NCBI GenBank assembly: GCA_964036045.1
Contig: OZ038379.1
Span: 76,818,001 to 76,882,000 of the forward strand
Direction: 5' to 3'
Length of the DNA: 64,000 nt
DNA from: Eutreptiella sp. 'Long Island Sound 2002'
Taxonomy: Eukaryota; Protista; Euglenida
The notes beneath the pieces are model-generated. The model was not told the DNA's origin. It searched no databases and saw nothing but the letters and a program-made list of their open reading frames with translations. This document shows, one piece after another, positions 33,135 to 64,000 of this stretch; positions within the stretch are counted from its first letter, which is position 1, and each line of letters opens with the position of its first letter. Position numbers and translations under genes: made by a program.

Positions 33135-36100
33135 TCACTGTTATTTCCGTCTGCGTTATTATTTCCTGTTGTGCTCTCGATGGTCACTATTATTTCCTGG
33201 TGTGCTCTCGATGGTCACTGTTATTTCCTGGGGTGCTCTGGATGGTGACTGTTATTTCCTAGTGTGCCCTGGATGGTCACTGTTATTTCCTCGTGTGCCC
33301 TGGATGGTCACTGTTATTTCCTAGTGTGCTCTTGATGGTCACTGTTATTTCCTGGTGTGCTGTGGATGGTCACTGTTATTTCCTGGTGTGCCCTGGATGG
33401 TCACTGTTGTTTCCTGGTGTGCTCTGGATGGTCACTGTTATTTCCTGGTGTGCCCTGGATGGTCACTGTTATTTCCTGGTGTGCCTTGGATGGTCAATGA
33501 TATTTCCTGGTGTGCTCTGGATGGTCACTGTTATTTCTTGGTGTGCCCTGGATGGTCACTGTTATTTCCTGGTGTGCCCTGGATGGTCACTGTTATTTCA
33601 TGGTGTGCCCTGAATGGTCACTGTTATTTCCTTGTGTGCCCTGGATGGTCACTGTTATTTCCTGGTGTGCCCTGGATGGTCATTGTTATTTCCAGGTGTG
33701 CCCTGGATGGTCACTGTTATTTCCTCGTGTGCCCTGGATGGTCACTGTTATTTCCTGGTGTGCTGTGGACGGTCACTGTTATTTCCTGGTGTGCCCTGGA
33801 TGATCACTGTTATTTCCTGGTGTGCTGTGGATGGTCGCTGTTATTTCTTGGTGTGCTGTGGATGGTCACTGTTATTTCCTGGTGTGCTGTGGATGGTCAC
33901 TGTTATTTCCTGGTGTGCTGTGGATGGTCACTGTTATTTCCTGGTGTGCTGTTGATGGTGACTGTTATTTCCTGGGGTGCCCTGGATGGTCACTGTTATT
34001 TCCTGGTGTGCCCTGAATGGTCACTGTTATTTCCTGGTGGACCCTGAATGGTCACTGTTAGTTCCTAGTGTGCCCTAGATGGTCACTGTTATTTCGTGGT
34101 GTGCCCTGGATGGTCACTTTGATTTCCTGTTTGCCCTGGATGGTCAATGTTATTTCCTGGTGTGCCCTGGATGGTCACTGTTATTTCCTGGTGTGCCCTG
34201 GATGGTCATTGTTATTTCCTGGTGTGCCCTGGATGGTCACTGTTATTTCCTTGTGTGCCCTGAATGGTCACTGTTATTTCCTGGTGTGCCCTGAATGGTC
34301 ACTGTTATTTCGTGGTGTGCCCTGAATGGTCACTGTTATTTCGTGGTGTGCCCTGAATGGTCACTGTTATTTCATGGTGTGCCCTGGATGGTCACTGTTA
34401 TTTCCTGGTGTGCCCTGGATGGTCGCTGTTATTTCCTGGTGTGCCCTGGATGGTCACTGTTATTTCCTGGTGTGCTCTAGATGGTCACTGTTATTTCTTG
34501 GTGTGCTGTGGATGGTCACTGTTACTTCCTGGTGTGCTGTGGATGGTCACTGTTATTTCCTGGTGTGCCTTGGATGGTCACTGTTATTTCCTTGTGTGCC
34601 CTGGATGGTCACTGTTATTTCCTGGTGTGCCCTGGAGGGTCACTGTTATTTCCTGGTGTGCCCTGGATGGTCACTGTTATTTCCTGGTGTGCCCTGGATG
34701 GTCACTGTTATTTCCTGGTGTGCCCTGGATGGTCACTGTTATTTCCTGGTGTGCCCTGGATGGTCACTGTTATTTCCTGGTGTGCCCTGGATGGTCACTG
34801 TTATTTCTTGGTGTGCTGTGGATGGTCACTGTTACTTCCTGGTGTGCTGTGGATGGTCACTGTTATTTCCTGGTGTGCCCTGGATGGTCACTGTTATTTC
34901 CTGGTGTGCTGTGGATGGTCACTGTTATTTCCTGGTGTGCTCTGGATGGTCACTGTTATTTCTTGGTGTGCCCTGGATGGTCACTGTTATTTCCTTGTGT
35001 GCCCTGGATGGTCACTGTTATTTCCTGGTGTGCCTTGGATGGTCACTGTTATTTCCTTGTGTGCCCTGGATGGTCACTGTTATTTCCTGGTGTGCCCTGG
35101 AGGGTCACTGTTATTTCCTGGTGTGCCCTGGATGGTCACTGTTATTTCCTGGTGTGCCCTGGATGGTCACTGTTATTTCCTGGTGTGCCCTGGATGGTCA
35201 CTGTTATTTCTTGGTGTGCCCTGGATGGTCACTGTTACTTCCTGGTGTGCCCTGGATGGTCACTGTTTTTTCTTGGTGTGCTCTGGATGTTCACTGTTAT
35301 TTCCTGGTGTGCCCTGGATGGTCACTGTTATTTCCTGGTGTGCCCTGGATGGTCACTGTTATTTCCTGGTGTGCTGTGGATGGTCACTGTTATTTCCTGT
35401 GGTGCCCTGGATGGTCACTGTTATTTCCTGGTGTGCCCTGAATGGTCACTGTTATTTCCTGGTGTGCCCTGGATGGTCACTGTTATTTCCTGGTGTGCCC
35501 TGAATGGTCACTGTTATTTCCTGGTGTGCCCTGATTGGTCACTGTTATTTCTTGGTGTGCCCTGAATGGTCACTGTTATTTCCTGGTGTGCCCTGAATGG
35601 TCACTGTTATTTCCTGGTGTGCCCTGATTGGTCACTGTTATTTCTTGGTGTGCCCTGGATGGTCACTGTTATTTCCTGGTGTGCTTTGGATGGTCACTGT
35701 TATTTCCTGGTGTGCCCTGGATGGTCACTGTTATTTCCTGGTGTGCTTTGGATGGTCACTGTTATTTCCTGGTGTGCTCTGGATGGTCACTGTTATTTCC
35801 TGGTGTGCCTTGATTGGTCGCTGTTATTTCCTGGTGTGCCGTGAATGGTCACTGTTATTTCATGGTGTGCCCTGGATGGTCACTGTTACTTCCTGGGGTG
35901 CTCTGGATGGTTACTGTTATTTCCTAGTGTGCCCTGAATGGTCGCTGTTATTTCCTGGTGTGCCGTGAATGGTCACTATTATTTCCTGGTGTGCTCTCGA
36001 TGGTCACTGTTGTTTCCTGGGGTGCTCTGGATGGTGACTGTTATTTCCTAGTGTGCCCTGCATGGTCACTGTTATTTCCTGGTGTGCCCTGGATGGTCAC

Positions 36101-39100
36101 TGTTATTTCCTGGTGTGCTGTGGATGGTCACTGTTATTTCCTGGTGTGCCCTGGATGGTCACTGTTGTTTTCTGGTGTGCTCTGGATGGTCACTGTTATT
36201 TCCTGCTGTGCCCTGGATGGTCACTGTTATTTCCTGGTGTGCCCTGGATGGTCAATGTTATTTCCTGGTGTGCTTTGGATGGTCAGTGTTATTTCCTGGT
36301 GTGCCCTGGATGGTCACTGTTATTTCCTGCTGTGCCCTGGATGGTCACTGTTATTTCCTGGTGTGCCCTGGATGGTCACTGTTATTTCCTGGTGTGCTCT
36401 GGATGGTCACTGTTATTTCCGTGTGTGCCCTGGATGGTCACTGTTATTTCGTGGTGTGCCCTGGATGGTCATTGTTATTTCCTGGTGTGCCCTGGATGGT
36501 CACTGTTATTTCGTGGTGTGCCCTGGATGGTCACTGTTATTTCCTGGTGTGCCCTGGATGGTCACTGTTATTTCCTGGTTCGCCCTGGATGATCACTGTT
36601 ATTTCCTGGTGTGCCCTGGATGGTCTATGTTATTTCTTGGTGTGCTGTGGATGGTCACTGTTATTTCCTGGTGTGCTGTGGATGGTCACTGTTATTTCCT
36701 GCTGTGCCCTGAATGGTCACTGTTATTTCCTGGTGTGCTGTTGATGGTCACTGTTATTTCCTCGGGTGCCCTGGATGGTCACTGTTATTTCCTGGTGGAC
36801 CCTGAATGGTCACTGTTATTTCCTAGTGTGCCCTAGATGGTCACTGTTATTTCCTGGTGTGCCCTGGATGGTCACTGTTATTTCCTGTGTGCCCTGGATG
36901 GTCACTGTTATTTCCTGGTGTGCTCTGGATGGTCAATGTTATTTCCTGGTGTGCTGTGGATGATCACTGTTATTTCCTGCTGTGCCCTGAATGGTCACTG
37001 TTATTTCCTGGTGTGCTGTTGATGGTCACTGTTATTTCCTCGGGTGCCCTGGATGGTCACTGTTATTTCCTGGTGGACCCTGAATGGTCACTGTTATTTC
37101 CTAGTGTGCCCTAGATGGTCACTGTTATTTCCTGGTGTGCCCTGGATGGTCACTGTTATTTCCTGTGTGCCCTGGATGGTCACTGTTATTTCCTGGTGTG
37201 CCTTGGATGGTCACTGTTATTTCGTGGTGTGCCCTGGATGGTCACTGTTATTTCCTGGTGTGCTCTGGATGGTCAATGTTATTTCCTCGTGTGCCCTGGA
37301 GGGTCACTGTTATTTCGTGGTGTGCCCTGGATGGTCACTGTTATTTCCTTGTGTGCCCTCAATGGTCCCTGTTATTTCCTGGTGTGCCCTGAATGGTCAC
37401 TGTTATTTCCTGGTGGCCCTGATTGGTCACTGTTATTTCTTGGTGTGCCCTGGATGGTCACTGTTATTTCCTGGTGTGCCCTGGATGGTCACTGTTATTT
37501 CCTGGTGTGCCTTGGATGGTCACTGTTATTTCCTGGTGTGCCCTGGATGGTCACTGTTGTTTCCTGGTGTGCTCTGGATGGTCACTGTTATTTCCTGGTG
37601 TGCCCTGGATGGTCACTGTTATTTCGTGGTGTGCCCTGAATGGTCACTGTTATTTCATGGTGTGCCCTGGATGGTCACTGTTATTTCCTAGTGTGCCCTG
37701 GATGGTCACTGTTATTTCCTGGTGTGCCCTGGATGGTCACTGTTATTTCCTGGTGTGCCCTGGATGGTCACTGTTATTTCTTGGTGTGCTGTGGATGGTC
37801 ACTGTTATTTCCTGGTGTGCCCTGGATGGTCACTGTTATTTCCTGGTGTGCCCTGGATGGTCACTGTTATTTCCTGGTGTGCCCTGGATGATCATTGTTA
37901 TTTCCTGGTGTGCCCTGGATGGTCACTGTTATTTCTTGGTGTGCTGTGGATGGTCACTGTTATTTCCTGGTGTGCTGTGGATGGTCACTGTTATTTCCTT
38001 GTGTGCCCCGGATGGTCACTGTTATTTCGTGGTGTGCTGTGGATGGTCACTGTTATTTCCTGGGGTGCCCTGGATGGTCACTGTTATTTCCTGATGTGCT
38101 GTGGATGGTCGCTGTTATTTCCTAGTGTGCCCTGAATGGTCACTGTTATTTCCTGGTGTGCCCTGGATGGTCACTGTTATTTCCTGGTGTGCCCTGATTG
38201 GTCACTGTTATTTCTTGGTGTGCCCTGGATGGTCACTGTTATTTCCTGGTGTGGTTTGGATGGTCACTGTTATTTCCTGTGTGCCCTGGATGGTCACTGT
38301 TATTTCCTGGTGTGCTCTAGATGGTCAATGTTATTTCCTGGTGTGCCCTGGATGGTCACTGTTATTTCCTGGTGTGCTGTGGATGGTCACTGTTATTTCC
38401 TGGTGTGCCATGGATGGTCGCTATTATTTCCTGGTGTGCCCTGAATGGTCACTGTTTTTTCCTGGTGTGCCCTGAATGGTCACTGTTGTTTCCTGGTGTG
38501 CCCTGATTGGTCACTGTTATTTCTTGGTGTGCCCTGGATGGTCACTGTTATTTCCTGGTGTGCCCTGGATGGTCACTGTTATTTTCTGGTGTGCCCTGGA
38601 TGGTCACTGTTATTTCCTGGTGTGCCTTGGATGGTCACTGTTATTTCCTGGTGTGCTCTGGATGGTCACTCTCATTTCCTGGTGTGCCCTGGATGGTCAC
38701 TATTATTTCCTGGTGTGCCCTGAATGGTCACTGTTATTTCCTGGTGTGCCCTGGATGGTCACTGCTATTTCCTAGTGTGCCGTGGATGGTCACTGTTATT
38801 TCCTGGTGTGCCATGGATGGTCATTGTTATTTCCTGGTGTGCCCTGGATGGTCACTGTTGTTTCCTGGTGTGCTCTAGATGGTCACTGTTATTTCTTGGT
38901 GTGCCCTGAATGGTCACTGTTATTTCCTGGGGTGCCCTGGATGATCACTGTTATTTCCTGGTGTGCCCTGGATGGTCACCGTTATTTCTTGGTGTGCTGT
39001 GGATGGTCACTGTTATTTCCTGGTGTGCTGTGGATGGTCACTGTTATTTCCTGGTGTGCCCTGAATGGTCACTGTTATTTCCTGGTGTGCTGTGGATGGT

Positions 39101-42100
39101 CACTGTTATTTCGTGGTGTGCCCTGGATGGTCACTGTTATTTCTTGGTGTGCCATGGATGGTCATTGTTATTTCCTTGTCTGCCCTGGATGGTCACTGTT
39201 ATTTCGTGGTGTGCCCTGGATGGTCACTGTTATTTCCTGGTGTGCCCTGGATGGTCACTGTTATTTCCTGGTGTGCCCTGGATGATCACTGTTATTTCCT
39301 GGTGTGCCCTGGATGATCACTGTTATTTCCTGGTGTGCCCTGGATGGTCACTGTTATTTCTTGGTGTGCTCTGGATGGTCACTGTTATTTCCTGGTGTGC
39401 TGTGGATGGTCACTGTTATTTCCTGGTGTGCCCTGGATGGTCACTGTTATTTCCTGGTGTGCTGTGGATGGTCACTGTTATTTCCTGGGGTGCCCTGGAT
39501 GGTCACTGTTATTTCCTGGTGTGCCCCGAATGGTCACTGTTATTTCCTAGTGTGCCCTGGATGGTCACTGTTATTTACTGGTGTGCCCTGGATGGTCACG
39601 GTTATTTCATGTGTGCCCTGGATGGTCGCTGTTATTTCCTGGTGTGCTCTGGATGGTCACTTTTATTTCCTGTGTGCCCTGGATGGTCAATGTTATTTCC
39701 TGGTGTGCTCTGGATGGTCACTTTTATTTCCTCGTGTGCCCTGGATGGTCACTGTTATTTCCTGGTGTGCCCTGGATGGTCACTGTTATTTCATGGTGTG
39801 CCCTGATTGGTCACTGTTATTTCTTGGTGTGCCCTGGATGGTCACTGTTATTTCCTGGTGTGTCCTGGATGGTCACTGTTATTTCCTGGTGTGCCCTGGA
39901 TGGTCACTGTTATTTCCTAGTGTGCCCTGGATGGTCACTGTTATTTCCTGGTGTGTCCTGGATGGTAACTGTTATTTCCTGGTGTGCTATGGATGGTCAC
40001 TGTTATTTCATGGTGTGCCCTGGATGGTCACTGTTGTTTGCTGGTGTGCCCTGAATGGTCACTGTTATTTCATGGTGTGCTCTGGATGGTCACTGTTATT
40101 TCATGGTGTGCCCTGGATGGTCACTGTTATTTCCTGGTGTGCCCTGGATGGTCACTATTATTTCCTGGTGTGCCCTGGATGGTCACTGTTATTTCCTGGT
40201 GTGCCCTGGATGGTAACTGTTATTTCCTGGTGTGCTCTGGATGGTCACTGTTATTTCCTGGTGTGCCCTGAATGGTCACTGTTATTTCCTGGTGTGCCCT
40301 GAATGGTCACTGTTATTTCATGGTTTGCCCTGGATGGTCACTGTTATTTCCTAGTGTGCCCTGGATGGTCATTGTTATTTCCTGGTGTGCTTTGGATGGT
40401 CACTGTTATTTCCTGGTGTGCCGTGAATGGTCACTGTTATTTCCTGGTGTGCCGTGAATGGTCACTGTTATTTCATGGTGTGCCCTGGATGGTCACTGTT
40501 ATTTCCTAGTGTGCCCTGGATGGTCACTTTTATTTCCTGGTGTGCTCTGGATGGTCACTGTTATTTCCTGGTATGCCCTAGATGGTCACTGTTATTTCCT
40601 GGTGTGCTCTGGATGGTCACTGTTATTTCTTGGTGTGCCCTGGATGGTCACTGTTATTTCCTGGTGTGCCCTGGATGGTCACTGTTATTTCCTTGTGTGC
40701 TGTGGATGGTCACTGTTATTTCCTGGTGTGCTTTGGATGGTCACTGTTATTTCCTGGTGTGCCCTAGATGGTCACTGTTATTTCCTGGTGTGCCCTGGAT
40801 GGTCACTGTTATTTCGTGGTGTGCCCTGAATGGTCACTGTTATTTCCTGGTGTGTCCTGGATGGTCACTGTTATTTCCTGGTGTGCCCTGGATGGTCACT
40901 GTTCTTTCCTGGTGTGCCCTGGATGGTCACTGTTATTTCCTTGTGTGCCCTGGATGGTCACTGTTATTTCCTGGTGTGCTGTGGATGGTCACTGTTATTT
41001 CCTGGTGTGCCCTGAATGGTCACTGTTATTTCATGGTGTGCCCTGGATGGTCACTGTTATTTCCTAGTGTGCCTTCGATGGTCACTGTTATTTCCTGGTG
41101 TGCTTTGGATGGTCACTGTTATTTCCTGGTGTGCCCTGAATGGTCACTGTTATTTCCTGGTGTGCCGTGAATGGTCACTGTTATTTCATGGTGTGCCCTG
41201 GATGGTCACTGTTATTTCCTGGTGTGCCCTGGATGGTCACTGTTATTTCCTGGTATGCCCTAGATGGTCACTGTGATTTCCTGGTGTGCTCTGGATGGTC
41301 ACTGTTATTTCTTGGTGTGCCCTGGATGGTCACTGTTATTTCCTGGTGTGCCCTGGATGGTCACTATTATTTCCTGGTGTGCCCTGGATGGTCACTGTTA
41401 TTTCCTAGTGTGCTTTGGATGGTCACTGTTATTTCCTGGTGTGCCCTGGATGGTCACTGTTATTTCCTGGTTTGCCCTGGATGGTCACTGTTATTTCGTG
41501 GTGTGCCTTGAATGGTCACTGTTATTTCCTGGTGTGTCCTGGATGGTCACTGTTATTTCCTGGTGTGCCCTGGATGGTCACTGTTCTTTCCTGGTGTGCC
41601 CTGGATGGTCACTGTTATTTCCTGGTGTGCTCTGGATGGTCACTGTTATTTCCTTGTGTGCCATGGATGGTCACTGTTATTTCCTGGTGTGCTGTGGATG
41701 GTCACTGTTTTTTCTTGGTGTGCGCTGGATGGTCACTGTTATTTCCTGGTGTGCTGTGGATGATCATTGTTATTTCCTGGTGTGCTCTGGATGGTCACTG
41801 TTATTTCTTGGTGTGCCCTGGATGGTCACTGTTATTTCCTTGTGTGCCCTGGATGGTCACTGTTATTTCCTGGTGTGCCCTGGATGGTCACTGTTATTTC
41901 CTTGTGTGCCCTGGATGGTCAGTGTTATTTCCTGGTGTGCCCTGGATGGTCACTGTTATTTCCTGGTGTGCCCCGGATGGTCACTGTTATTTCCTGGTGT
42001 GCCCTGGATGGTCACTGTTATTTCCTGGTGTGCCCCGGATGGTCAGTGTTATTTCTTGGTGTGCTGTGGATGGTCACTGTTATTTCCTGGTGTGCTGTGG

Positions 42101-44410
42101 ATGGTCACTGTTATTTCCTGGTGTGCCCTGGATGGTCACTGTTATTTCCTGGTGTGCTGTGGATGGTCACTGTTATTTCCTGGGGTGCCCTGGATGGTCA
42201 CTGTTATTTCCTGGTGTGCCCTGAATGGTCACTGTTATTTCCTGGTGGGCCCTGAATGGTCACTGTTATTTCCTAGTGTGCCCTAGATGGTCACTGTTAT
42301 TTCCTGGTGTGCTGTGGATGGTCACTGTTATTTCATGGTGTGCCCTGGATGGTCGCTGTTATTTCCTGGTGTGCTCTGGATGGTCAATGTTATTTCCTGG
42401 TGTGGTCTGGATGGTCACTTTTATTTCCTCGTGTGCCCTGGATGGTCACTGTTATTTCCTGGTGTGCCCTGGATGGTCACTGTTATTTCCTGGTGTGACC
42501 TGAATGGTCACTGTTATTTCCTAGTGTGCCCTGGATGGTCACTGTTATTTCCTGGTGTGCCCTGATTGGTCACTGTTATTTCTTGGTGTGCCCTGGATGG
42601 TCACTGTTATTTCCTGGTGTGCCCTGGATGGTCACTGTTATTTCCTGGTGTGCCCTGGATGGTCACTGTTATTTCCTGGTGTGCCCTGGATGGTCAATGT
42701 TATTTCCTGGTGTGCTCTGGATGGTCACTGTTATTTCCTGGTGTGCCCTGGATGGTCACTGTTATTTCCTGGTGTGCTCTGGATGGTCACTGTTATTTCC
42801 TAGTGTGCCCTGGATGGTCACTGTTATTTCCTGGGGTGCCCTGGATGGTCACTGTTATTTCCTTGTGTGCCCTGGATGGTCACTGTTATTTCCTGGTGTG
42901 CCCTGGATGGTCACTGTTATTTCCTGGTGTGCTGTTGATGGTCACTGTTATTTCCTGGTGTGCCCTGAATGGTCACTGTTATTTCCTGGTGTGCCCTGAA
43001 TGGTCACTGTTATTTCCTGGTGTGCCCTGAATGGTCACTGTTATTTCCTAGTGTGCCCTGGATGGTCACTGTTATTTCCTGGTGTGCTTTGGATGGTCAC
43101 TGTTATTTCCTGGTGTGCCCTGAATGGTCACTGTTATTTCCAGGTGTGCCGTGAATGGTCACTGTTATTTCATGGTGTGCCCTGGATGGTCACTGTTATT
43201 TCCTAGTGTGCCCTGGATGGTCACTGTTATTTCCTGGTGTGCTTTGGATGGTCACTGTTATTTCCTGGTGTGCCCTGGATGGTCACTGTTATTTCCAGGT
43301 GTGCCGTGAATGGTCACTGTTATTTCATGGTGTGCCCTGGATGGTCACTGTTATTTCCTAGTGTGCCCTGGATGGTCACTGTTATTTCCTGGTGTGCCGT
43401 GAATGGTCGCTGTTATTTCATGGTGTGCCCTGGATGGTCACTGTTATTTCCTGGTGTGCCCTGGATGGTCAATGTTATTTCCTGGTGTGCCCTGGATGGT
43501 CACTGTTATTTCCTGGTGTGCCCTAGATGGTCCCTGTTATTTCCTGGTGTGCTCTGGATGGTCACTGTTCTTTCTTGGTGTGCCCTGGATGGTCAGTGTT
43601 ATTTCCTGGTGTGCCCTAAATGGTCACTGTTATTTCCTGGTGTCCGTGGATGGTCACTGTTTTTTCCTGGTGTGCTTTGGATGGTCACTGTTATTTCCTG
43701 GTGTGCCCTGGATGGTCGCTGTTATTTCCTGGTGTGCCCTGGATGGTCACTGTTATTTCGTGGTGTGCCCTGAATGGTCACTGTTATTTCCTGGTGTGTC
43801 TTGGATGGTCACTGTTATTTCCTGGTGTGCCCTGGATGGTCACTGTTCTTTCCTGGTGTGCCCTGGATGGTCACTGTTATTTCCTGGTGTGCTCTGGATG
43901 GTCACCGTTATTTCTTGGTGTGCCCTGGATGGTCACTGTTATTTCCTGGTGTGCCCTGGATGGTCACTGTTATTTCCTGGTGTGCCCTGGATGGTCACTG
44001 TTATTTCCTCGTGTGCTGTGGATGGTCACTGTTATTTCCTGGTGTGCCCTCGATGGTCACTGTTATTTCCTGGTGCACCCTGGATGGTCACTGTTATTTC
44101 CTGGTGTGCTCTGGATGGTCATTGTTATTTCGTGGTGTGCCCTGGATGGTCACTGTTATTTCCTGGTGTGCCCTGGATGGTCACTGTTATTTCCTGGTGT
44201 GCCCTGAATGGTCACTGTTATTTCATGGTGTGCCCTGGATGGTCACTGTTATTTCCTGGTGTGCTCTGGATGGTCACTGTTATTTCCTGGTGTGCTCTGG
44301 ATGGTCACTGTTATTTCCTGGTGTGCTCTGGATGGCCACTGTTATTTCCTGGTGTGCCCTGGATGGTCGCTGTTATTTATTGGTGTGCTCCCGATGGTCA
44401 CCGTTGTTCC
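33135..44410 (+). repeat. 31-bp satellite, consensus GGATGGTCACTGTTATTTCCTGGTGTGCCCT, ~364 copies
   Basis: Continuous 31-bp periodicity over ~11.3 kb. The consensus has no stop codon on the + strand, which explains the repeated 31-aa ORF MVTVISWCALDGHCYFLVCPGWSLLFPGVPW. Confidence 0.98.
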
Positions 44411-44743
44411 CTGCTTCGTGCACAAGCAAAACAAGTCACGCCATACAAACACAAAGCAAAGCATGGAAATTGAAGAAGTGACGGCCCCGTATGGGCTGTA
44501 CATACCACCGGAACTCATCATGTGACCTCAGTATGCCGAACATTGCTGCATATGCGTAAAAGGACATGCATGTGTGGAGCGCTGCTTGCCCTGTGTGCGC
44601 CCCCCCCCCGTCTCACTATTGCTAAGCATTCGCCTGCATCCACCACCAATGCACCTGCAGTCCACCTTCGTTCCACGTCCACCCCCGCCGCCATCTCAGC
44701 ACGTGATGCAGTCCATGTACGGTGCAATCATTAGGTGTCCAAC

Positions 44744-52182: not shown

Positions 52183-53039
52183 GGCTGAAAGTCTGGGTGT
52201 AGAGGAGTGCAACAAGTGCCAGACACAACTGTGAGCATGGCGCAAATGGAACAACCACCAATCCATTGGTGTTAGGGGTAGGGCAAAGAGAACGGGACCT
52301 CAAAAGGTACACAATGCTGCTGCCCCTTCCCCCATTCCCCAACAGTTGGTTTGCTGGATCAGTTTGCGCTTCTCAGTCTGAGCAGTGGTTCATTGTGCTG
52401 GCCGCTCCAGACTGCCAAATACTTGTGGCACTGGCTGCCAGAGGTGAACAGCTGTGAAGTGTATGTCATTTGCAGAAACATCACGAGGCGAGACCATCAT
52501 TGTATCAGCAGAGAGAGATATGCAGATGGCAAGGGGGAAAGACCTGCAAGGGCTCCAGAAGGTACGCCCGGAACGATGCCTGGAAGAAGCCCAGCAACCA
52601 CTGCGGCGTCACTTGGGTATACCGCAGCCACCAGACCGCACGGTACATGAGCCAGCATGCAGCCGTGATGTGCGCCCAATGCCGCGTATTAGACGGTCGC
52701 AACTGGTCCATAATCGTGAGGGCCTCTTTGCGGTAGTCGACGGTCTGTTTCACGACTTTGATCAGGAGTTTAAGGTCGTTCGCGGGGTCGACTCTATCGA
52801 AGCCCTGCGAGCCCACCTGCATCTCATCAAGCACGGGCTCCCTTCTGGGATCTGCAGATGGCATGGAAGAGGGCGTGGCAGGAGGCACGGAAGGTGCCGT
52901 GGCAGATGGGATAGCAGAGAGTAGTGGGTAGAGCAGTAGGTACGGCAGAGGGTATGGCAGAGGGTATGGCAGAAGGTATGGCGGTGGGTATGGCTTTGTC
53001 GTTGCCTTTGGCTTTCGGGGTGATTCTGCCCATGTGCAT

Positions 53040-53547
53040 CGCAACACAGGGCAGAGTGGAGATGTGTCTGCCCCTTTGCATGTCAGCAAATGGCAAAGGG
53101 GATGCTTCTGCCCCTACGCTTGTTAGCACAGGGCAGAAGGGAGGTGTTTTTACTCCTGTGCACGTCAGCACAGGGCAGAGGGGGGGTGCTTTTGCCCCTG
53201 TGCACGTCAGCAAAGGGCAGAGGGGGGGGGGTGGTTTCTGCTCTTGTACACGGCTGCACAGGCAGAGGGGAGGTGTGTTTGCCCCGTGCATGCCCGCAAA
53301 CAGCACAGGGGGGGGGGTATTTTCTGCCCATGTGCAGGCCAGCATGGGGCAGAGGGGGAGGTATTTCTGCCCCTGTGTACGTTAGCACAGGGCAAAGGGG
53401 AGATGTTTCTGCCCTTGTGCATATGAACACAGGGCAAGGGAGGAGGTATTTCTATGCCTATACACCTCAGCACAGGGCAGAGGGGAGGTGTTTCGGCCCC
53501 TATGCACGTGAGCATGAGGCAGAGGGGAGGTGTTTCTGCCCCTGTGC

Positions 53548-53548
<1 letters not shown>
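53040..53548. repeat. ~42-bp hairpin tandem repeat (~12 copies)
   Basis: Unit about AGCACAGGGCAGAGGGGAGGTGTTTCTGCCCCTGTGCACGTC; agca(c/a)agggcag at 53125, 53167 and 53209. GCACAGGGCAGA pairs with TCTGCCCCTGTGC. Confidence 0.9.
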
Positions 53549-53578
<30 letters not shown>

Positions 53579-53593
53579 TGTATGTATGTATGT
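53549..53593. repeat. (TATG)n microsatellite
   Basis: About 11 TATG copies directly after the hairpin array. Confidence 0.95.
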
Positions 53594-54855: not shown

Positions 54856-56695
54856 ATGGCGCGCAGAGGGGACGGGCACCAGTGGCGCCATCCACTGGAA
54901 CCCCTGCACTCGCCGAATGATGACAAAGATTGTCATGATGTAGCTCGCCTATGGGGATGGAAGTGGGTATGCCAAGACAACCAAGACATGAAGGCCAAGG
55001 CGGTCATGCGTTGGACTTGTGCATCTTGTGGAGCATCCAAGGATGTACGGTTCGATAACATGAAGAAGTTGGGTCCGGGAAAGCACAAGTGTTCAAAACA
55101 ATCTCAACCACAAGAGAAAGAGGCAAATGCGAAAGGAAAAGATGGTCGCCCATCCGTCACCACGTGCGGCGGAATGTGGATGTGATTGGTTGGGGGTGCT
55201 TGTGGACAATGCCGTGCATGTAGATGACTCCCTCATTTCCTCAATTTGTGTGATGCGATGACCATGTTGGGGTTGTACTACCAACTTTGATCGTACATAC
55301 AAAAAAATGAAGAGTTGGGGCTTTGTTTGCTCCACTTGCAACGCATCACAACTTAAGGAGGACAAAAAGCGCGCAGGGCAAGCAGGTGTTGTGGTGGCAT
55401 CTAAGGAGGACAAAAAGCGTGCAGGGCAAGCGTGTGGTGTGGTGGCATCTCGAGAGGACAAGCAGCGGGCACGGCAAGCGGGCTCCAAGGAGAACAAGCA
55501 GCGGGCAGGGCAAGCGGGCTCCAAGGAGGACAAGCAGCGGGCAGGTAAAGCGGGCTCCAAGGAGGACAAGCAGCGGGCGGGACAGGCTAGCCCTAGGGAG
55601 GGCAAGCAGCGAGCGGGGCAAGAGGGGGGCAGGCGCTAAGGAGGATAAGCAAAGGGCAGGGCAAGCTGGGGCCGTTAGACATGCTTTGAATTATGCACGT
55701 GAAACCTTGCCAAGCCAGTCAACACAGGCCATTCAGAACATGTGGGAGAGAGGCGATGAGATGAAACTGTCCGGTTCTGTTGTGGATGAAGACGAGGAAG
55801 TCATGCCGCAATCGGTTGCAGGCCCATCACCCAATGAGTTTACGGGATCAAAGGTCGGCACATCCCTTGCTTCCACTGTGAGAGGGTTTTTTCGGTGCAA
55901 ACCGGGATGGACAGATTTCCAGTCCAACCAGTAGCCAATTAGGAGAGTTGTGAGTCTTTGGACGCCTTGGTGCGAGCTATCCTGGATGAGAAGGTGAAGA
56001 CCGCCGATATGGTGGCGTTGGCCAAAGAGTGGCACAAAAAAGTGGGAGTATGCGAGGACATTCATTCTTGCGGGTGCTGCGGAGTGAGGGACTTCCAACA
56101 AGTGAAGGAAGTCGAGCTATCCAAGTTGGATCTTTTAAAGTTGGACGCAGAACAAGTTTCATGGTACCGTGGGATTCCCATTGAGTATCGTAAGTATGCT
56201 GCGGTCTTTGAACAGGACACAGGGCTATATTGGTTGCACCATGATCTTGTATCTAATGGTGTAGTGCAATTGTGTAATTCATGCCATCGGAGTTTGCTCC
56301 ATCCAAAGAAAGGTCAAGTGCCACCAAATGCCATTGCTAGTGGCAAGCATTTTGGTAAGCGATGCGACTTACCGGAGTTAACGGATTTGGAGGAGCGTAT
56401 GTTATGACGAGTGCGGACGACACTAAACACAATGAAGCTTGTTAGTGCAAGAATGGCGTAACATCGCAGTGGGGTGTTCGGGGACATGCCGTTTCTGTAC
56501 CGCATGATGACCCGAAAGTGTTGGCAGCAAGTCTACCAGATGTAGAGGCTCTTGTGGGTACAAAGATCATCTTTGTGGGACCAATCCGCGATGCGGAGGC
56601 AATGCGTCGTGATCAACGTGGCAAAGAACGAGGAGAGCGAATATTCACACCGCAATGGGATCAACTCATTCAATGGTTGCGAGTTTTAAAAGTGA
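54856..56695 (+). pseudogene. Disrupted N-terminal part of a Helitron2/Helentron-type RepHel ORF (DUF6570-like domain)
   Basis: The joined translation reads CNSCHRSLLHPKKGQVPPNAIASGKHFGKRCDLPELTDLEERML*RVR..MKL..GHAVSVPHD..LAASLP..IIFVGP..QLIQWLRVLKV. This follows the motif order I recall for DUF6570 upstream of the Helitron Rep domain (CxxC..P..AxANG..G..L..LT..EE..GH..P..FxGP..V..WL..LK..NP.Y). Stops at 56405 and 56459 and a frameshift near 56480. Upstream fragments carry CxxC motifs. The ORF is cut at 56695 by the ~605-bp element. The upstream boundary is uncertain. Confidence 0.75.
55354..55670 (+). repeat. 36-bp (variant 48-bp) frame-preserving tandem repeat encoding KEDKQRAGQAGS
   Basis: About 8 copies of aaggaggacaagcagcgggcagggcaagc; main unit lengths are multiples of 3 (one frame slip late in the array). 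Confidence 0.85.
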
Positions 56696-59600
56696 TTACC
56701 GAGCTGGGTTTACCCTGTCAAGGCTTTACACCACCTTTTAGGGTCCAAGGGTGAGCAACACGTTTTAGCAAGCAACAGCAGCAGCAAGCAGCAGCAAGCA
56801 GCAGCAGCAGCAAGCAGCAGGCAGGCGTGTGACCACACCGCGGCTCAAAACCGGCATCCAAGTGGCTCAAAACGACCGGGGTGCAGACACGCATAACCAC
56901 CAACAGGGTTCGTGCCGTTTTGAGCCGTCTAGCCCGTTCTACGGCGCATTTAGTGTCCAAAAAATGGCCGTTTTTGGGCTGTTTTAAGGACCATCGTCTT
57001 GAAAGTTCAGCACGATCGACGGTGTGTCAAGTGGGCATTTGCAATCAGGGCGGTTGTTCTTCCATGGCGATTTGGGTATCAAAGGAATGCAAATCAGTGT
57101 TCAATAAGGCACGTACCATGCCGTGGTGGCACACCGTCGTCCATTTTGAGGTGAAAATGAGCCGTTTTTGAGCCGCGATCCAGGAAAATCGTCCTCATTG
57201 TGGCAGCACATCTGCAAAGCAAGCTGCCTTTCCTCCGCAGCAATTTCCTATGTGGTACGCAAGACTAGGACCCAGCTCGGTCCTCGTTCGAGTTTTGATT
57301 ACGGAGCTGGGTTTACCCTGTCGAGGTTTTACACCACCTTTTAGGGTCCAAGGGAGAGGAACATATCTTAACAAGCAGCAAGCAGCAGCAGCGGCAGCAA
57401 GAACGGGCGGTTAAAAAGTCCTTGCGACCACACCGCGGCTCAAAATGGGCATCCAAGTAGCTCAAAACGACCGGGGAGGAGAGGCACATCACCGCAAATA
57501 GGTTTTGTGCCGTTTCGAGGCGTCCAGCTCGTTCTATGGCCGATTTAGTGTCCAAAAATGGCCATTTTTGGGCTGTTTTCAGGAAGATCGTCCTGAGTTT
57601 TCTTGGGTTTGTCCAATAGGCGATTCCAGTCAACGTTGCTTTTCTTGCACAACGATTAGACAATCAAATGATTGCAAATGGGTGATGAAGAAGGCATCCT
57701 CAGCACCGCAGTGTCTTCCCGTGGTCCTTTCGGGTAAAAAACATGGGCGTTTTTGAGTTGGTTTTCAAGAGCACGCACCAGCAAGCAACAGGCGGTCAAA
57801 AAGTCCATGGAACGACACCGTGGGTCAACACCGGCTTCCAAGTAGCTCAAAACGACCGGGGAGCAAATGCGCATCACAACAAACAAAGTTCGTGCCGTTT
57901 TGAGGCGTCTAGCGCGCGGTATGGCAAATTTAGTGCCCAACAATGGCCGTTTTGGGGCTGTTTGCAAGACAATCATTGGTGACCGTGGAGGAAAATCAAT
58001 AAGGCACGTGCCATGCCGTGGTGGCACACCGTCGTCCATTTTGAGGTGAAAATGAGCCGTTTTTGAGCAGCGATTCAGCAAAATCGTCCTCACTGTGGAG
58101 GAACAATTGCAAAGCAAGCGGGCTTTGCTCCACGGTGATTTCCAATGCGTTAACCAAGACTAGGACCCAGCTTGGTCCTCGTGGTGAGTCTTGATTGCCG
58201 AGCTGGGTTTACCCTGTCGAGGTGTTACACCACCTTTTTGGGGGTCCAAAAATGAGCTACACATTGTAGCTATAAGCAGCAGCAGCAAGCAGCAGCAGCA
58301 AGCAGGGGGTTAAAAAGTCCTTGCGAGGACACCGTGGCTCAAAACCGGCATCCAAGTAGCTCAAAACGACCGGGGAGCAAAGGTGTATTACACAAACAAG
58401 TTTTGTGCCGTTTCGAGCCCTCTAGCTCGTTCAATGGCCGCTTTGCTGTCCAAAAATGACCGTTTTGGGGCTGTTTTGAGGGAGATTGTCGTGAAAACTC
58501 AGGACGATCGTTGGTGTGCCCAGTAGGTGTTTCGAAATAGGGCCTCTATTTTTCCATGGCAAATGCGCCATCAAAGCAATGCAACAGGGAGGGGAATAAG
58601 GCGAGTGCCATGCCGTGGTGGCACGGGGTGGGCGATTTCGAGGTGCAAACAAGCTTTTTTTGAGACATGTTTGAGGACGATCGTCGTGACTGTGGAGGAA
58701 CATCTGCAAAGCAAGCCAGTTGTGCTCCACGGTGATTTCAACTACGTTAATCAAGACTCGAACTAGGACCGAGCTGGGTCCTAGTCTTGCGTAACGCATG
58801 GGAAATCACCGTTGAAGAAAGACCGCTTGCTTTAGAGATGTACCTCCATGCTTACGGCGATTGTCCTCAAACACGGCTCAAAACGGCTCATTTTCACCTC
58901 AAAATGGACCACCGCGTGGCACCACGGCGTGGTACACGCCTTATTGAACACCCATTTGCCATCCTTTGATGGCCCAATCGCCATGAAAGAACAACGGCCG
59001 TGAGAGGGAACACCTGCTTGGCGTAGCGGCGATCGTCCTCAACTTTCGAGACGATCGTCCTGAAAACGGCCAAAAACAGCCCAAAAACGGCCTTTTTGGG
59101 ACACTAAATCGGCCGTAGAACGGGCTATGCGGCTCGAAATGCAATGAAACTTGTTTGTGGTGATGCGCGTTTGCTCCCCGCTCGTTTTGAGCTACTTGGA
59201 TGCCGGTTTTGAGCCACGGTATGGTCACAAGAACTTTTGGACCTTCTGTTGCTGCTTGCTGCTGCCTGCTGCTTGCTAAAACGTGTAGCTCATCCTTGGC
59301 CCCTAAAAGGTGGTGTAAAACCTCGACAGGGTAACCCCAGCTCGGTAACCAAGATCAAGACTCGAACTAGGACCGAGGTGGGTCCTAGTCTTGCGTAACG
59401 CATGGGAAATCACCGTTGAAGAAAGACCGCTTGCTTTAGAGATGTGCCTCCATGGTTACGACGATTGTCCTGAAACACGGCTCAAAACGGCTCATTTTCA
59501 CCTCAAAATGGACCACCACGTGGAACCACGGAGTGGTACACGCCTTATTGAACACCCATTTGCCATCCTTTGATAGCCCAATCGCCATGAAAGAACAACG

Positions 59601-62600
59601 GCCCTCATCGGAAACACCGGCTTGGCGTAGCGGCGATCGTCCTGAACTTTCAGGACGATCGTCCTGAAAACGGCCGAAAACAGCCCAAAAACGGCCATTT
59701 TTGGACACTAAATGGGCCGTAGAACCGGCTAGACGGCTCGAACCGCAACGAAACTTGTTTGTGGAGATGCGCCTAAGCTCCCCGGTCGTTTTGAGCTACT
59801 TGGATGCCGGTTTTGAGCCGCGGTGTGGTCGCAAGGACTTTTGGGGCGCCTACTGCTGCTTGCTGCTGCTTGCTGCTGCTGCTAAAACGTGTTGCTCACC
59901 CTTGGCCCCTAAAAGGTGGTGTAAAACCTCGACACGGTAAACCCAGCTCGGTAATCAAGACTCCAACTAGGACCGAGCTGGGTCCTAGTCTTGCGTAACG
60001 CATGGGAAATCACCGTTGAAGAAAGACCGCTTGCTTTAGAGATGTGCCTCCATGGTTACGACGATTGTCCTGAAACACGGGTCAAAACGGCTCATTTTCA
60101 CCTCAAAATGGACCACCGTGTGGCACCACGGCATGGTACATGCCACATTGCACACCCATTTGCCATCATTTGACAGGCCAATCGCCACGGAAGAACAACG
60201 GCCCTCATTGCAAACGCCCACTTGACACACCGGCGATCGTCCTGGGTTTTCAGGACGATCGTCCTGAAAACAGCCAAAAACAGCCCAAAAACGGCCTTTT
60301 TTGGGCACTAAATGGGCCGTAGAGCGGGCTAGACGGGCTCAAAATGCATCGAAACTTGTTTGTGGTGATGCGCCTTGGCTCCCTGGTCGTTTTGAGCTAC
60401 TTGAATGCCGGTTTTGAGCCACGGTGTGGTCGCAAAGCCTTTTTAAGCGCCTGCTGCTGTTGCTTGCTGCTGCTGCTTGCTGCTCGCTGCTTGCTGCTGC
60501 TAAAGCGTGTTGCTCAGCCTTGGCCCCTAAAAGGTGGTGTAAAACCTCGACAGGGTAAACCCAGCTCGGTAATCAAGACTCGAACTAGGACCGAGCTGGT
60601 TCCTAGTCTTGCGTAACGCATGGGAAATCACCGTTGAGGAAAGACTGCTTGCTTTAGAGATGTGCCTCCATGGTTACGACGATTGTCCTGAAACACGGCT
60701 CAAAAACGGCTTGTTTTCACCTCAAAATGGACCATCACGTGGCACCACGGAGTGGTACACGCCTTATTAAACACCCATTTGCCATCCTTTGATAGCCCAA
60801 TCGCCATGAAAGAACAACGGCCCTCATCGGAAACACCTGCTTGGCGTAGCGGCGATCGTCCTGAACTTTCAGGACAATCTTCCTGAAAAAAGCCAAAAAC
60901 AGCCTAAAAACGGCCATTTTTGGACACTAAATCGGCCGTAGAACGGCTTCGACGGCTCGAAAAGCAACGAAACTTGTTTGTGGTGATGCGCCTTGGCTCC
61001 CCGGCCGTTTCGAGCTACTTGGATGCCGGTTTTGAGCCGCGGCATGGTCGCAAGGACTTTTCAAGCGCCCGCTTGCTTGCTTGCTTGCTGCTGCTGCTGC
61101 TGCTGCTGTTGCTGCTAAAACGTGTTGCCCACCCTTGGCCCCTAAAAGGTGGTGTAAAACCTCGACAGGGTAACCCCAGCTCGGTAATCAAGACTCAAAC
61201 TAGGACCGGGCTGGGTCCTAGTGTTGCGTAACGCATTGGAGATCACCGTTGAAGAAAGCCGGCTTCCTTTCGAGATGTGCCTCCATGGTTACGGCGATGG
61301 TCCAGAAACGCGGCTGGAAAAATGCTCATTTTCACCTCAAAATGGACCACCGCGTGGCACCACGGAGTGGTACACGCCTTATTGAACACCCATTTGCCAT
61401 CATTTCATAGCCCAATCGCCATGGAAGTACAACGGCCCTCATCTCAAACAGCTGCTTGGTGTAGCGGCGATCGTCCTGAACTTTTAGGACCATTGTCCTG
61501 AAAACGGCCGAAAAGAGCCCAAAAACGGCCATTTTTGGACACTAAATCGGCCGTAGAACCGGCTAGACGGCTCGAACCGCAACGAAACTTGGTTGTGGTG
61601 ATGCGCCTTGGCTCCCCGGTCGTTTTGAGCTACTTGAATGCCGGTTTTGAGCCGCGGCGTGGTCGCAAGGACTTTTCAAGCGCCTGCTTGCTTGCTTGCT
61701 GCTACTGCTGCTGCTGCTGCTGTTGGTGCTAAAACGTGTAGCTCATCCTTGGCCCCTAAAAGGTGGTGTAAAACCTCGACAGGGTAAACCCAGCTCGGTA
61801 ACCAGGACCTAGCTCCGTCCTAGTCGTGAGTCTTGATTACCGAGCTGGGTTTACCCTATCCAGGTTTTACACCACCTTTTAGGGTCCAAGGATGAGCTAC
61901 ACGTTTTAGCAAGCATCAAGCAGCAGCAGCAGCACGCAGGCCGTTAAAAAGTCCTTGCAACGGCACCGTGGCTCCGAACCGGCATCCAAGTAGCTCAAAA
62001 CGACTGGGGAGCAAAGGCGCATCACCGGAAACAGGTTTCGTGCCGTTTCAAGCCGTCTAGCCCGTTCTACAGCCGATTTAGTGTCCAAAAATGACTGTTT
62101 TTGGGCTGTTTTCAGGACGATTGTCCCGAAAACTCGGGACGATCGCCGGTGTGTCAAGTGGGAGTTTGCAATGAGGGCCATGGTTCTTCCATGGCGATTG
62201 AGCTATCAAATGATGGCAAAAGGGTGTTCAATACGGCATGTACCATGCCGTGGTGCCACATGGTGGTACATTTTGAGGTGAGAATTAGCCGTTTTTGAGA
62301 CGTTTTTCAGGACGGTAATCCTGACGGTGGAGGGATATCTCTGAAGCAAGCGGTCTTTGTTCAACGGTGATCTCCGATGCGTTACGCAAGATTAGGACCC
62401 ACCTCAGTCCTAGTTCGAGTCTTGATTACCGAGCCGCGTTTACCCTGTCGAGGTTTTACGCCACCTTTTAGGGTCCAAGGATGAGCGACACGTTTTAGCA
62501 GCAAGCAAGCAGCAACAGCAAGTAGGCGGTTAATCAAGACTCGAACTAGGACCGAGCGGGGTCCTAGTTTTGCGTATCGCATGGGAAATCACGGTTGAAG

Positions 62601-64000
62601 AAAGACCGCTTGCTTTAGAGATGTGCCTCCATGGTTACGGCGATTGTCCTCAAATGAGGACGGAAAACGGCTCATTTTCACCTCAAAATGGACCATCACG
62701 TGGCACCACGGCGTGGTACACGCCTTATTGAACACCCATTTGCCATCCTTTGATAGCCCGATCGCCATGAAAGAGCAACGGCCCTCATCGAAAACACCTG
62801 CTTGGCGTAGCGGCGATCGTCCTGAACTTTCAGGACGATCGTCCTGAAAACGGCCGAAAACGGCCCAAAAACGGCCTTTTTTGGACACTAAATCGGCCGT
62901 AGAACGGGCTAGACGGCTCGAAAAGCAACGAAACTTGTTTGTGGTGATGCGCCTTGGCTCCCCGGTCGTTTTGAGCTACTTGGATGCCGGTTTTGAGCCA
63001 CGTTGTGGTCGCAAGGACGTTTGGACCGCCTGCTTGCTGCTGCTTGCTGCTGCTTGCTGCTTGTTGCTGCTGAAACGTGTAGCTCAGCCTTGGCCCCTAA
63101 AAGGTGGTGTAAAACCTCGACAGGGTAAACCCAGCTCGGTAATCAAGACTCGAACTAGGACCGAGCTGGGTCCCAATCTTGCGTAACGCATGGGAAATCA
63201 CCGTTGAAGAAAGAGCGCTTGCTTTAGAGATGTGCCTCCATGCTTACGGCGATTGTCCTGAAACACAACTGGAAAACAGCTCATCTTCACCTCAAAATGG
63301 ACCACCGCGTGGCACCATGGAGTGGTACACGCCTTATTGAACACCCATTTGCCATACTTTGATAGCCCAATCGCCATGAAAGAACAACGGCCCTCATTGG
63401 AAACACCTGCTTGGCGTAGCGGCGATCGTCCTGAACTTTCAGGACGATCGTCCTGAAAACGGCCAAAAAAAGCCCAAAAAAGGCCATTTTTGGACGCTAA
63501 ATCGGCCGTAGAACCGGCTAGACGGCTCGAAACGCAACGAAACTTGATTGTGGTGATGTGCCTTAGCTCCCCGGTCGTTTTGAGCTACTTGGATGCCGGT
63601 TTTGAGCCACGGTGTGGTCCCAAAGACTTTTTAACCGCCTGCTTGCTGCTACTGCTTGCTGCTGCTGCTTGCTGCTGCTGCTTGCTGCTGCTAAAACGTG
63701 TTACTCGGCCTTGGACCCTAAAAGGTGGTGTAAAACCTCGAAAGGGTAAACCCAGCTCGGTAATCAAGACTCGAACTAGGACCGAGCTGGGTCCTAGTCT
63801 TGCGTAACGCATTGGAAATCACCGTTGAAGAAAGACCGCTTGCTTTGCAGATGTACCTCAAGGGTCAGGACGATTGTGCTGAAACACGGCTCAGAAACGG
63901 CTCATTTTCACCTCAAAATGGACCACCGCGTGGCACCACGGCGTGGTACACGCCTTTTTGAACACCCATTTGCCATCCTTTGATAGCCCCATCGCCATGA
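56696..64000. mobile_element. Nested tandem array of a ~590-620-bp non-autonomous Helitron2/Helentron-like element (about 14 full or partial copies, both orientations, runs off the window)
   Basis: Copies read TTACCGAGCTGGGT...ACTAGGACCCAGCTCGGTCCTAGT TCGAGTCTTGA. They have a 12-bp asymmetric inverted repeat (ACCGAGCTGGGT / ACCCAGCTCGGT), a 9-bp-stem hairpin ~11 nt from one end, an internal GCT/GCTT microsatellite and no TSD. Forward copies start at 56696, 57299, ~57770 (partial), 58195, 61837 and 62426; reverse copies at 58751, 59355, 59955, 60573, 61188, 62534, 63143 and 63764. Confidence 0.75.

Follow-up and report, generated by a model that had tools for sequence, protein, structure and literature searches.

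Head-to-tail arrays of a 600-bp unit with Helitron2-type termini and nested insertions in the euglenid Eutreptiella

Organisation of the unit array

A stretch of 64,000 nt from the genome of Eutreptiella sp. 'Long Island Sound 2002' (NCBI GenBank assembly GCA_964036045.1, contig OZ038379.1, positions 76,818,001 to 76,882,000) was analysed. This whole stretch is called the window, and positions refer to its numbering unless a locus of another assembly is named. Its last 7.3 kb (56696-64000) contain 13 copies of a unit of about 600 bp, five in forward (F1-F5) and eight in reverse orientation (R1-R8), preceded by a decayed fragment of a RepHel transposase gene (Table 1). The arrangement is that of an old forward array, F1-F5, which was invaded three times by a younger reverse subfamily, once by the single unit R1, once by the four units R2-R5, and once by at least three units, R6-R8.

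Motif scans combined with a MAFFT alignment yielded the copy map. Forward copies read 5'-TTACCGAG...GAGTCTTGA-3' on the plus strand. The 28-nt 5' terminus occurs 12 times in the window and the core of the 3' hairpin at 13 sites, all of them within 56696-64000, with 0 expected from shuffled sequences in both cases; because the core is nearly palindromic, its 13 sites gave 21 strand matches. Unit termini were detected nowhere else in the window, and no matching 5' end is present upstream of the RepHel fragment. Matches in a BLAST search of the window with one unit were confined to 56715-63997. One identical end-to-end junction is seen at all tandem joins, here and in the related loci described below; the only deviations are point mutations and, in two copies, a short 5' deletion. 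With 13 units in 7.3 kb, the region has the long head-to-tail arrays of one monomer that define a satellite, a label which describes the organisation of the units and says nothing about their origin. An array of RNA genes was also considered and is ruled out by an Rfam scan of the whole window, which yielded no family.

Table 1 Features of the unit array, its target sites and related RepHel elements. A slash marks a point of insertion or junction. Positions of the last three elements refer to loci of ENA assembly ERZ25074135.
Feature	Position	Strand	Description
RepHel fragment	54922-56696	+	decayed; N-terminal region and most of DUF6570; sharp cut at both ends
F1	56696-57298	+	full unit, 603 bp; first base is the end of RepHel homology
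F2	57299-58194	+	896 bp, including an internal extra of ~290 bp
F3 part a	58195-58750	+	unit positions 1 to ~556; F3 hosts two nested insertions
R1	58751-59348	-	lone full unit within F3; no target site duplication
F3 part b	59349-59354	+	six host bases CCAAGA between both insertions; aligns with CCAAGA of F2
R2	59355-59954	-	first of four head-to-tail units (R2-R5) within F3
R3	59955-60572	-	block R2-R5
3' hairpin of R3	59966-59989	-	9-bp stem, 6-nt loop, stops 11 nt short of 3' end; encloses 3' inverted repeat (59972-59983)
CAG/CAA microsatellite of R3	60451-60501	.	internal; present in every full copy
5' inverted repeat of R3	60559-60570	-	12 bp, 2 nt from 5' end; conserved in 12 copies
R4	60573-61187	-	block R2-R5
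R5	61188-61801	-	block R2-R5
F3 part c	61802-61836	+	rest of host hairpin and 3' terminus
F4	61837-62425	+	full unit
F5	62426-62533	+	first 108 bp of unit; broken by block R6-R8
R6	62534-63142	-	head-to-tail block R6-R8 within F5
R7	63143-63763	-	block R6-R8
R8	63764-64000	-	block R6-R8; cut by window end
Target, R1			T/T; both flanks observed; ambiguous T given to host
Target, R2-R5			T/C; both flanks observed; ambiguous T given to host
Target, R6-R8			T/T; 5' flank inferred from other F copies
Target, F array in RepHel			T/C; 3' flank inferred from paralogues
L001+L003 element	8088-25509		5' part is unit 1-577, then unique sequence just before the hairpin; 3' part is unit ~470-610, hairpin and CTTGA at L003:15960-15993
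L004 second RepHel copy	starts 7066		5' part is unit 1-576 at 7066-7641; 3' end beyond locus
L005 element	8699-19783		5' part is unit 1-430; 3' part is unit 328-610; unit arrays on both sides

Structure of the unit

The 12-bp asymmetric inverted repeat ACCGAGCTGGGT is perfect and lies 2 nt from the 5' end and 17 nt from the 3' end of the unit. Together with the 3' hairpin and the internal microsatellite, which TRF detects in unit copies, this is the anatomy that had been claimed in an earlier note on this DNA, made by a model without database searches and referred to here as the sequence-only reading. The first base of the element is T, as is the first base of every 3' flank; the boundary is therefore ambiguous by one base and can be written as TTACC...CTTGA or TACC...CTTGAT.

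The 3' hairpin folds better than shuffled sequences (-9.1 kcal/mol, z -2.0, for the 3' end of R4 at 60573-60632). At head-to-tail junctions the two inverted repeats are predicted to pair with each other, forming a stem of 10 bp that carries the joined ends in its loop of 19 nt (z -3.4 and -3.5). Such a fold would agree with the idea of Bao and Jurka that pairing of the repeats marks the end point of replication.

Nested insertions and target sites

The three pieces of F3 rejoin to a copy of 597 bp that aligns to F2 without a gap across the break (...GTTAA CCAAGA CTAGG...). No base was lost or gained, and therefore neither of the two insertions, R1 and R2-R5, made a target site duplication (TSD). 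R1 is located between GTTAA and CCAAGA of F3, R2-R5 six bases further, and R6-R8 begin after GGTTAA in F5. Each reverse block begins exactly at the unit 3' terminus, and both blocks with their far end inside the window stop exactly at the unit 5' terminus. The nested insertions thus fix the termini and the target rule without experiment. They also bear out two proposals of the sequence-only reading, a Helitron2-type non-autonomous unit with precise ends and no TSD, for which F3 and an uninterrupted site in RepHel paralogues (see below) speak alike, and insertion of copies into their own older copies, as seen for the reverse blocks inside F3 and F5.

If the ambiguous T is assigned to the host, insertion occurred within T/T or T/C in four out of four events, the start of the forward array in the RepHel gene being counted as one of them. 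These sites match the published Helitron2 rule, by which elements insert behind a T and in front of a T or C (PMC3627910; see also the summaries in PMC13085455 and PMC5148889). The marks of canonical Helitrons (HLE1), namely 5' TC, 3' CTRR and an A/T target, were not observed; A/T is possible at just one of the four sites.

The tandem unit junction is itself a T/T site. Over 18 bases, the R1 target matches this joined-end junction at 11 positions, which places it in the top 0.16% of host positions, and the other three targets match at seven to eight. The R1 target site arises as a by-product of the hairpin when the opposite strand is read. Mimicry of the junction as a feature of the R1 target is a post hoc hint, which holds for one of the four targets.

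Relative ages of the copies

Pairwise divergence is 8.9% among reverse copies, 21.7% among forward copies and 19.0% between the two groups. Reverse copies represent a separate subfamily with a 10-bp indel and diagnostic substitutions in common. In a maximum likelihood (ML) tree, R1, R2 and R4-R7 form one clade (support 100/99) with 11 units from another assembly (ENA ERZ25074135), and terminal branches in this clade measure 0.03-0.06 versus 0.08-0.23 for F1-F4. Because divergence and tree agree, the order of events deduced from the nesting, forward copies old and reverse copies young, is independently confirmed, and with it the impression gained by eye in the sequence-only reading. The description of the family as recently amplified in the same reading does not hold: at 8.9% from each other, even the young copies do not appear to be recent by their divergence, and their hosts are 21.7% apart. 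One reverse copy, R3, is a mosaic, carrying the R-type indel and, near unit positions 330-400, a segment of the type found in forward copies and autonomous elements; it falls outside the young clade.

The multi-unit blocks might not be concatemer insertions. It is quite possible, if not the course we favour, that one unit landed and that later ones were added singly at its end junction, which offers a T/T site. Divergence between units of one block (7.7-9.2%) is no lower than that between units of different blocks (8.4%). In the ML tree, several units have partners other than their block neighbours: R1 pairs with R6, R5 with a unit of locus L005 of the other assembly and R7 with a second unit of L005 (support 81-93). 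Mixed blocks are, however, explained equally well if a multi-unit piece of an already mixed array moved after read-through of an internal 3' end. Moreover, support for these pairings is modest and gene conversion could mix variants.

Autonomous elements with the same termini

An exhaustive phmmer search revealed 77 relatives, the long ones carrying DUF6570, Helitron_like_N and PIF1. Two of the relatives lie on long contigs of ENA assembly ERZ25074135, from which five loci were taken; L001 and L003 were merged at offset 9516. Three RepHel elements of 11-17 kb were found which begin with the first 430-577 bp of the unit and end with its hairpin terminus. The question raised by the sequence-only reading, whether autonomous RepHel elements have the same ends, can thus be answered positively for L001+L003, L004 and L005 in this other assembly. 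Because both termini are in common and the middle is removed, the unit is regarded as a non-autonomous derivative of these elements, in the relation known from textbooks for non-autonomous and autonomous Helitrons. The locus L002 was dropped as a boundary test, its copy being too decayed and about 7 kb away from its array.

The autonomous elements are embedded in unit arrays. Two full units and a degenerate one precede the L001+L003 element and more units follow directly downstream, while most of the 6-7 kb upstream of the L005 element is occupied by units in broken runs. In both cases the flanking arrays have the same orientation as the element. In L004, the 3' hairpin end of an upstream RepHel copy is joined directly to the 5' end of the next at 7065/7066, so that complete elements are also found head-to-tail.

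The least damaged copy is that of L005, where a single frame of 2389 codons (10001-17167) is interrupted by only two stops, at codons 613 and 1837, and encodes DUF6570, Rep, PIF1 helicase and a C-terminal DnaJ domain. This nearly intact RepHel-DnaJ frame of 2,386 residues could serve in a transposition assay. Pfam detected only DUF6570, Helitron_like_N, PIF1, AAA_30, AAA_19 and DnaJ in the proteins of L004 and L005, and no endonuclease domain (Exo_endo_phos). A sequence search of PDB with the RepHel protein returned PIF1 helicases only and no Helitron transposase, and thus gave no help with its classification. An IS200/IS605-like model of the unit was rejected, since the partner encodes RepHel.

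Units of both sources mix in one clade, which suggests that the assembly ERZ25074135 derives from the same or a very close species. Scans of JGI metagenomes with a conserved 24-mer and a junction 22-mer gave 0 matches.

Two further observations concern these elements. Their 3' parts hold long arrays of an internal tandem repeat of about 110 bp (L004:2813-6185 and 16249-22148; L001+L003 merged 17302-18579), much expanded in L004. The extra sequence of F2, located within 57597-57996, consists of a partial unit repeat and a piece of about 85 bp with homology to L001:8660-8730. In the autonomous element this L001 sequence comes after unit position 577. F2 is possibly a recombinant, or else a deletion derivative of greater length.

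The RepHel fragment at the start of the array

The fragment upstream of F1 shows 83-88% nucleotide identity to L001:9514-11360, L004:8468-10299 and L005:9445-11361. In every comparison with these three paralogues the homologous segment extends from 54922 to 56696; its last position is the first base of F1 and lies about 10 codons short of the end of DUF6570. Because of this identity and the shared breakpoints, the array can be said to abut a dead gene of its own family. When relatives were compared with the window by tblastn, they covered the region from about 55350 to 56706; the frame shifts near 55890 and 56450, and stop codons occur at 56405 and 56458. The rest of the window contains no Rep or helicase part. 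The sequence-only reading had placed the array start at the point where a DUF6570-like open reading frame (ORF) stops. The boundary was correct, homology ending at 56696, and the DUF6570 assignment now comes from homologues and an Atlas feature match of 0.98; Pfam on the ORF pieces of the window itself gave nothing at E<=1.

Coding repeats of 36/48 bp are present at 55354-55626 in the N-terminal part of the fragment and specify KEDKQRAGQAGS-like repeats; paralogues align here at several offsets, so that copy number varies between copies. At the other end of the fragment, homology to the paralogues begins right at the start of their coding region, and the sequence upstream differs in the window, where an alternative ATG is located at 54856 (54856-54922). 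Judged by this comparison, the fragment was cut or replaced at its 5' side as well.

Within this dead RepHel gene the forward array begins, its first base being precisely a unit 5' end. In three out of three paralogues the uninterrupted site ...AAAGTGAT/CAATCC... (GTGAT/CAATCC) is found, and an insertion at GTGAT/C obeys the T/C target rule of the other insertions. The junction could also have formed by loss of the 3' part of a RepHel element upstream of an array, if the transposase stopped or nicked at a cryptic end (GTGA/T resembling the true end TTGA/T) or if a deletion ended at the 5' end of the next unit. In L001+L003 and L005 the RepHel element is immediately followed by a unit array of like orientation, as the ORF is by F1 in the window; gene and F1 have four bp, TGAT, in common at the join; and with a cut at 54922 the locus was rearranged anyway. 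Yet a plain deletion would strike the exact unit start about once in 600, and such a truncation is considered possible but doubtful. In either case, the window retains no more than 1.8 kb of an element of 11-17 kb, truncated on both sides and interrupted by frameshifts and stops. The claim of the sequence-only reading that the array disabled a potential helper is therefore not sustained, the more so as 56696 could be a 3' truncation.

Origin of the arrays

Terminal structure, absence of a TSD, target rule and termini shared with a RepHel element all fit Helitron2/HLE2. On the protein side DUF6570, an HLE2-clade-specific marker in the HELIANO survey (PMC11417382), supports this placement. Very probably, then, the unit of about 600 bp is a non-autonomous deletion derivative of a Helitron2-type (HLE2) transposon, with an autonomous form of 11-17 kb encoding one long DUF6570-Rep-PIF1-DnaJ protein. 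The RepHel protein would nick at the 5' end, peel off one strand and stop at the 3' hairpin terminus. Read-through past an internal 3' end of an array, or replication of a circle with joined ends, could carry several units at once. As the T/T junction of an existing copy would be a valid target, arrays could grow by self-targeting until a satellite is formed.

Several points weigh against this interpretation. The proposed 5' hairpin, with a stem of 3+1+3 bp, is no better than shuffled sequences (z -0.36), and the 3' inverted repeat lies inside the hairpin and not upstream of it as in the Helitron2 type description. The target rule was derived from four events, two of them with one flank inferred. 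Membership of the HLE2 clade is read from a marker domain and not from a tree. The partners stem from another assembly than the window, and no exact matches to window ORFs were found in the records of ERZ25074135. Finally, a solo copy in unique DNA was not seen, R1 being the sole single-unit insertion, and the outer array ends at the ENA loci are truncated units rather than termini.

The last two observations would also be expected of an ordinary satellite, with units almost exclusively in arrays and orientation switches caused by inversions or assembly errors instead of transposition. The junctions are hard to reconcile with such an origin. A single inversion cannot give the joins, as the left one needs breakpoints at unit positions ~566 and 610 and the right one at 1 and ~573, and on this difference the inversion model was rejected. 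Furthermore, reverse copies are a distinct, much younger subfamily with its own indel, the host copy rejoins to the base, and RepHel elements have both unit termini. An ordinary satellite is thus very improbable, and a Helitron2-type derivative remains the preferred explanation. The locus can be read as a dated history, precise to the base, of how a rolling-circle transposon turns into satellite DNA, with old arrays, nested younger copies, embedded autonomous copies and a dead transposase gene at the edge.

A more far-reaching proposal is that the transposase or the paired repeats may recognise junction mimics beyond T/Y and that the junction stem, presenting the joined ends in its 19-nt loop, would act like a rolling-circle origin. 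Arrays would then be self-renewing landing pads, and mixed multi-unit blocks would move by read-through of internal ends. We regard this combination as speculative and unlikely; if true, junction-mimic targeting would be a site-directed mechanism of satellite birth.

Other repeats in the window

Three further repeat regions were noted. A satellite with a period of 982 bp extends from 5927 to 30828 on the plus strand, with about 25 head-to-tail copies that are up to 99% identical; its sequence is unrelated to the 600-bp unit. Another satellite with a period of about 31 bp (~33150-44500, about 360 copies) has an extreme AT skew of -0.58 and long spurious ORFs in three frames; the sequence-only reading placed it inside a hAT-like shell. 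A GC-rich stretch upstream of the RepHel fragment, 53019-53593, contains a repeat with a period of 42 bp (12.5 copies, 70% matches) followed by (TATG)11.

Comparison with known systems

Among the closest matches are the non-autonomous Helitron2 elements described by Bao and Jurka (2013, PMC3627910), for example Helitron-1N1_CRe with 657 bp. Like the unit, they have short asymmetric terminal inverted repeats of 8-15 bp, of which the 5' one lies 0-2 nt from the end, as well as a 3' hairpin and a 5' T; they make no TSD, insert between a T and a following T or C, and measure near 600 bp. The unit differs in the position of its 3' repeat, which is inside the hairpin and 17 nt instead of 20-30 nt from the end, in its weak 5' hairpin, in a target without a TTTT run, and in the occurrence of nearly all copies in head-to-tail arrays. 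A 3' repeat that is part of the hairpin is known from the Helitron2-type FoHeli elements of Fusarium oxysporum (PMC5148889), for which joined-end (circular) forms, self-insertions and occasional tandem copies were reported too. FoHeli, in contrast, consists mostly of dispersed autonomous copies with other terminal sequences, and long arrays of mini-derivatives were not described.

DINE-1/HINE elements (PMC4067079) resemble the unit in having subterminal inverted repeats close to the 5' end (2-4 nt), a microsatellite in the interior, a stem-loop at the 3' side and T-rich targets, but their Helentron partners carry an AP-endonuclease domain. No such domain was found in the proteins of L004 and L005. 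Strictly speaking, the family is therefore not a Helentron, and the unit is HINE-like rather than a HINE; the comparison with Helentron/DINE-1 in the sequence-only reading has to be narrowed to this extent. Satellite-like parts of HINEs are usually internal repeats, as in the Helentron-borne repeats of oyster (PMC7492417); in the present arrays it is the complete element that is repeated. Complete elements linked 3' end to 5' end are known for Helitron-1_DPe on the Y of Drosophila pseudoobscura (bioRxiv 10.1101/2021.06.02.446622), where they were ascribed to rolling-circle transposition.

Tandem Helitron copies or self-insertions have also been described in Fusarium and in the bat, rice, maize and Drosophila cases cited in PMC5148889. 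No report of a Helitron in Euglena was found in the literature, and the family would be the first of Helitron2 type that we found described from a euglenid; it could help to explain a very repeat-rich genome. Compared with the known tandem arrays, those described here flank autonomous copies on both sides and hold dated reverse nested insertions that fix the termini. The route from transposon to satellite is already known, and this locus is a new and unusually clear example of it.

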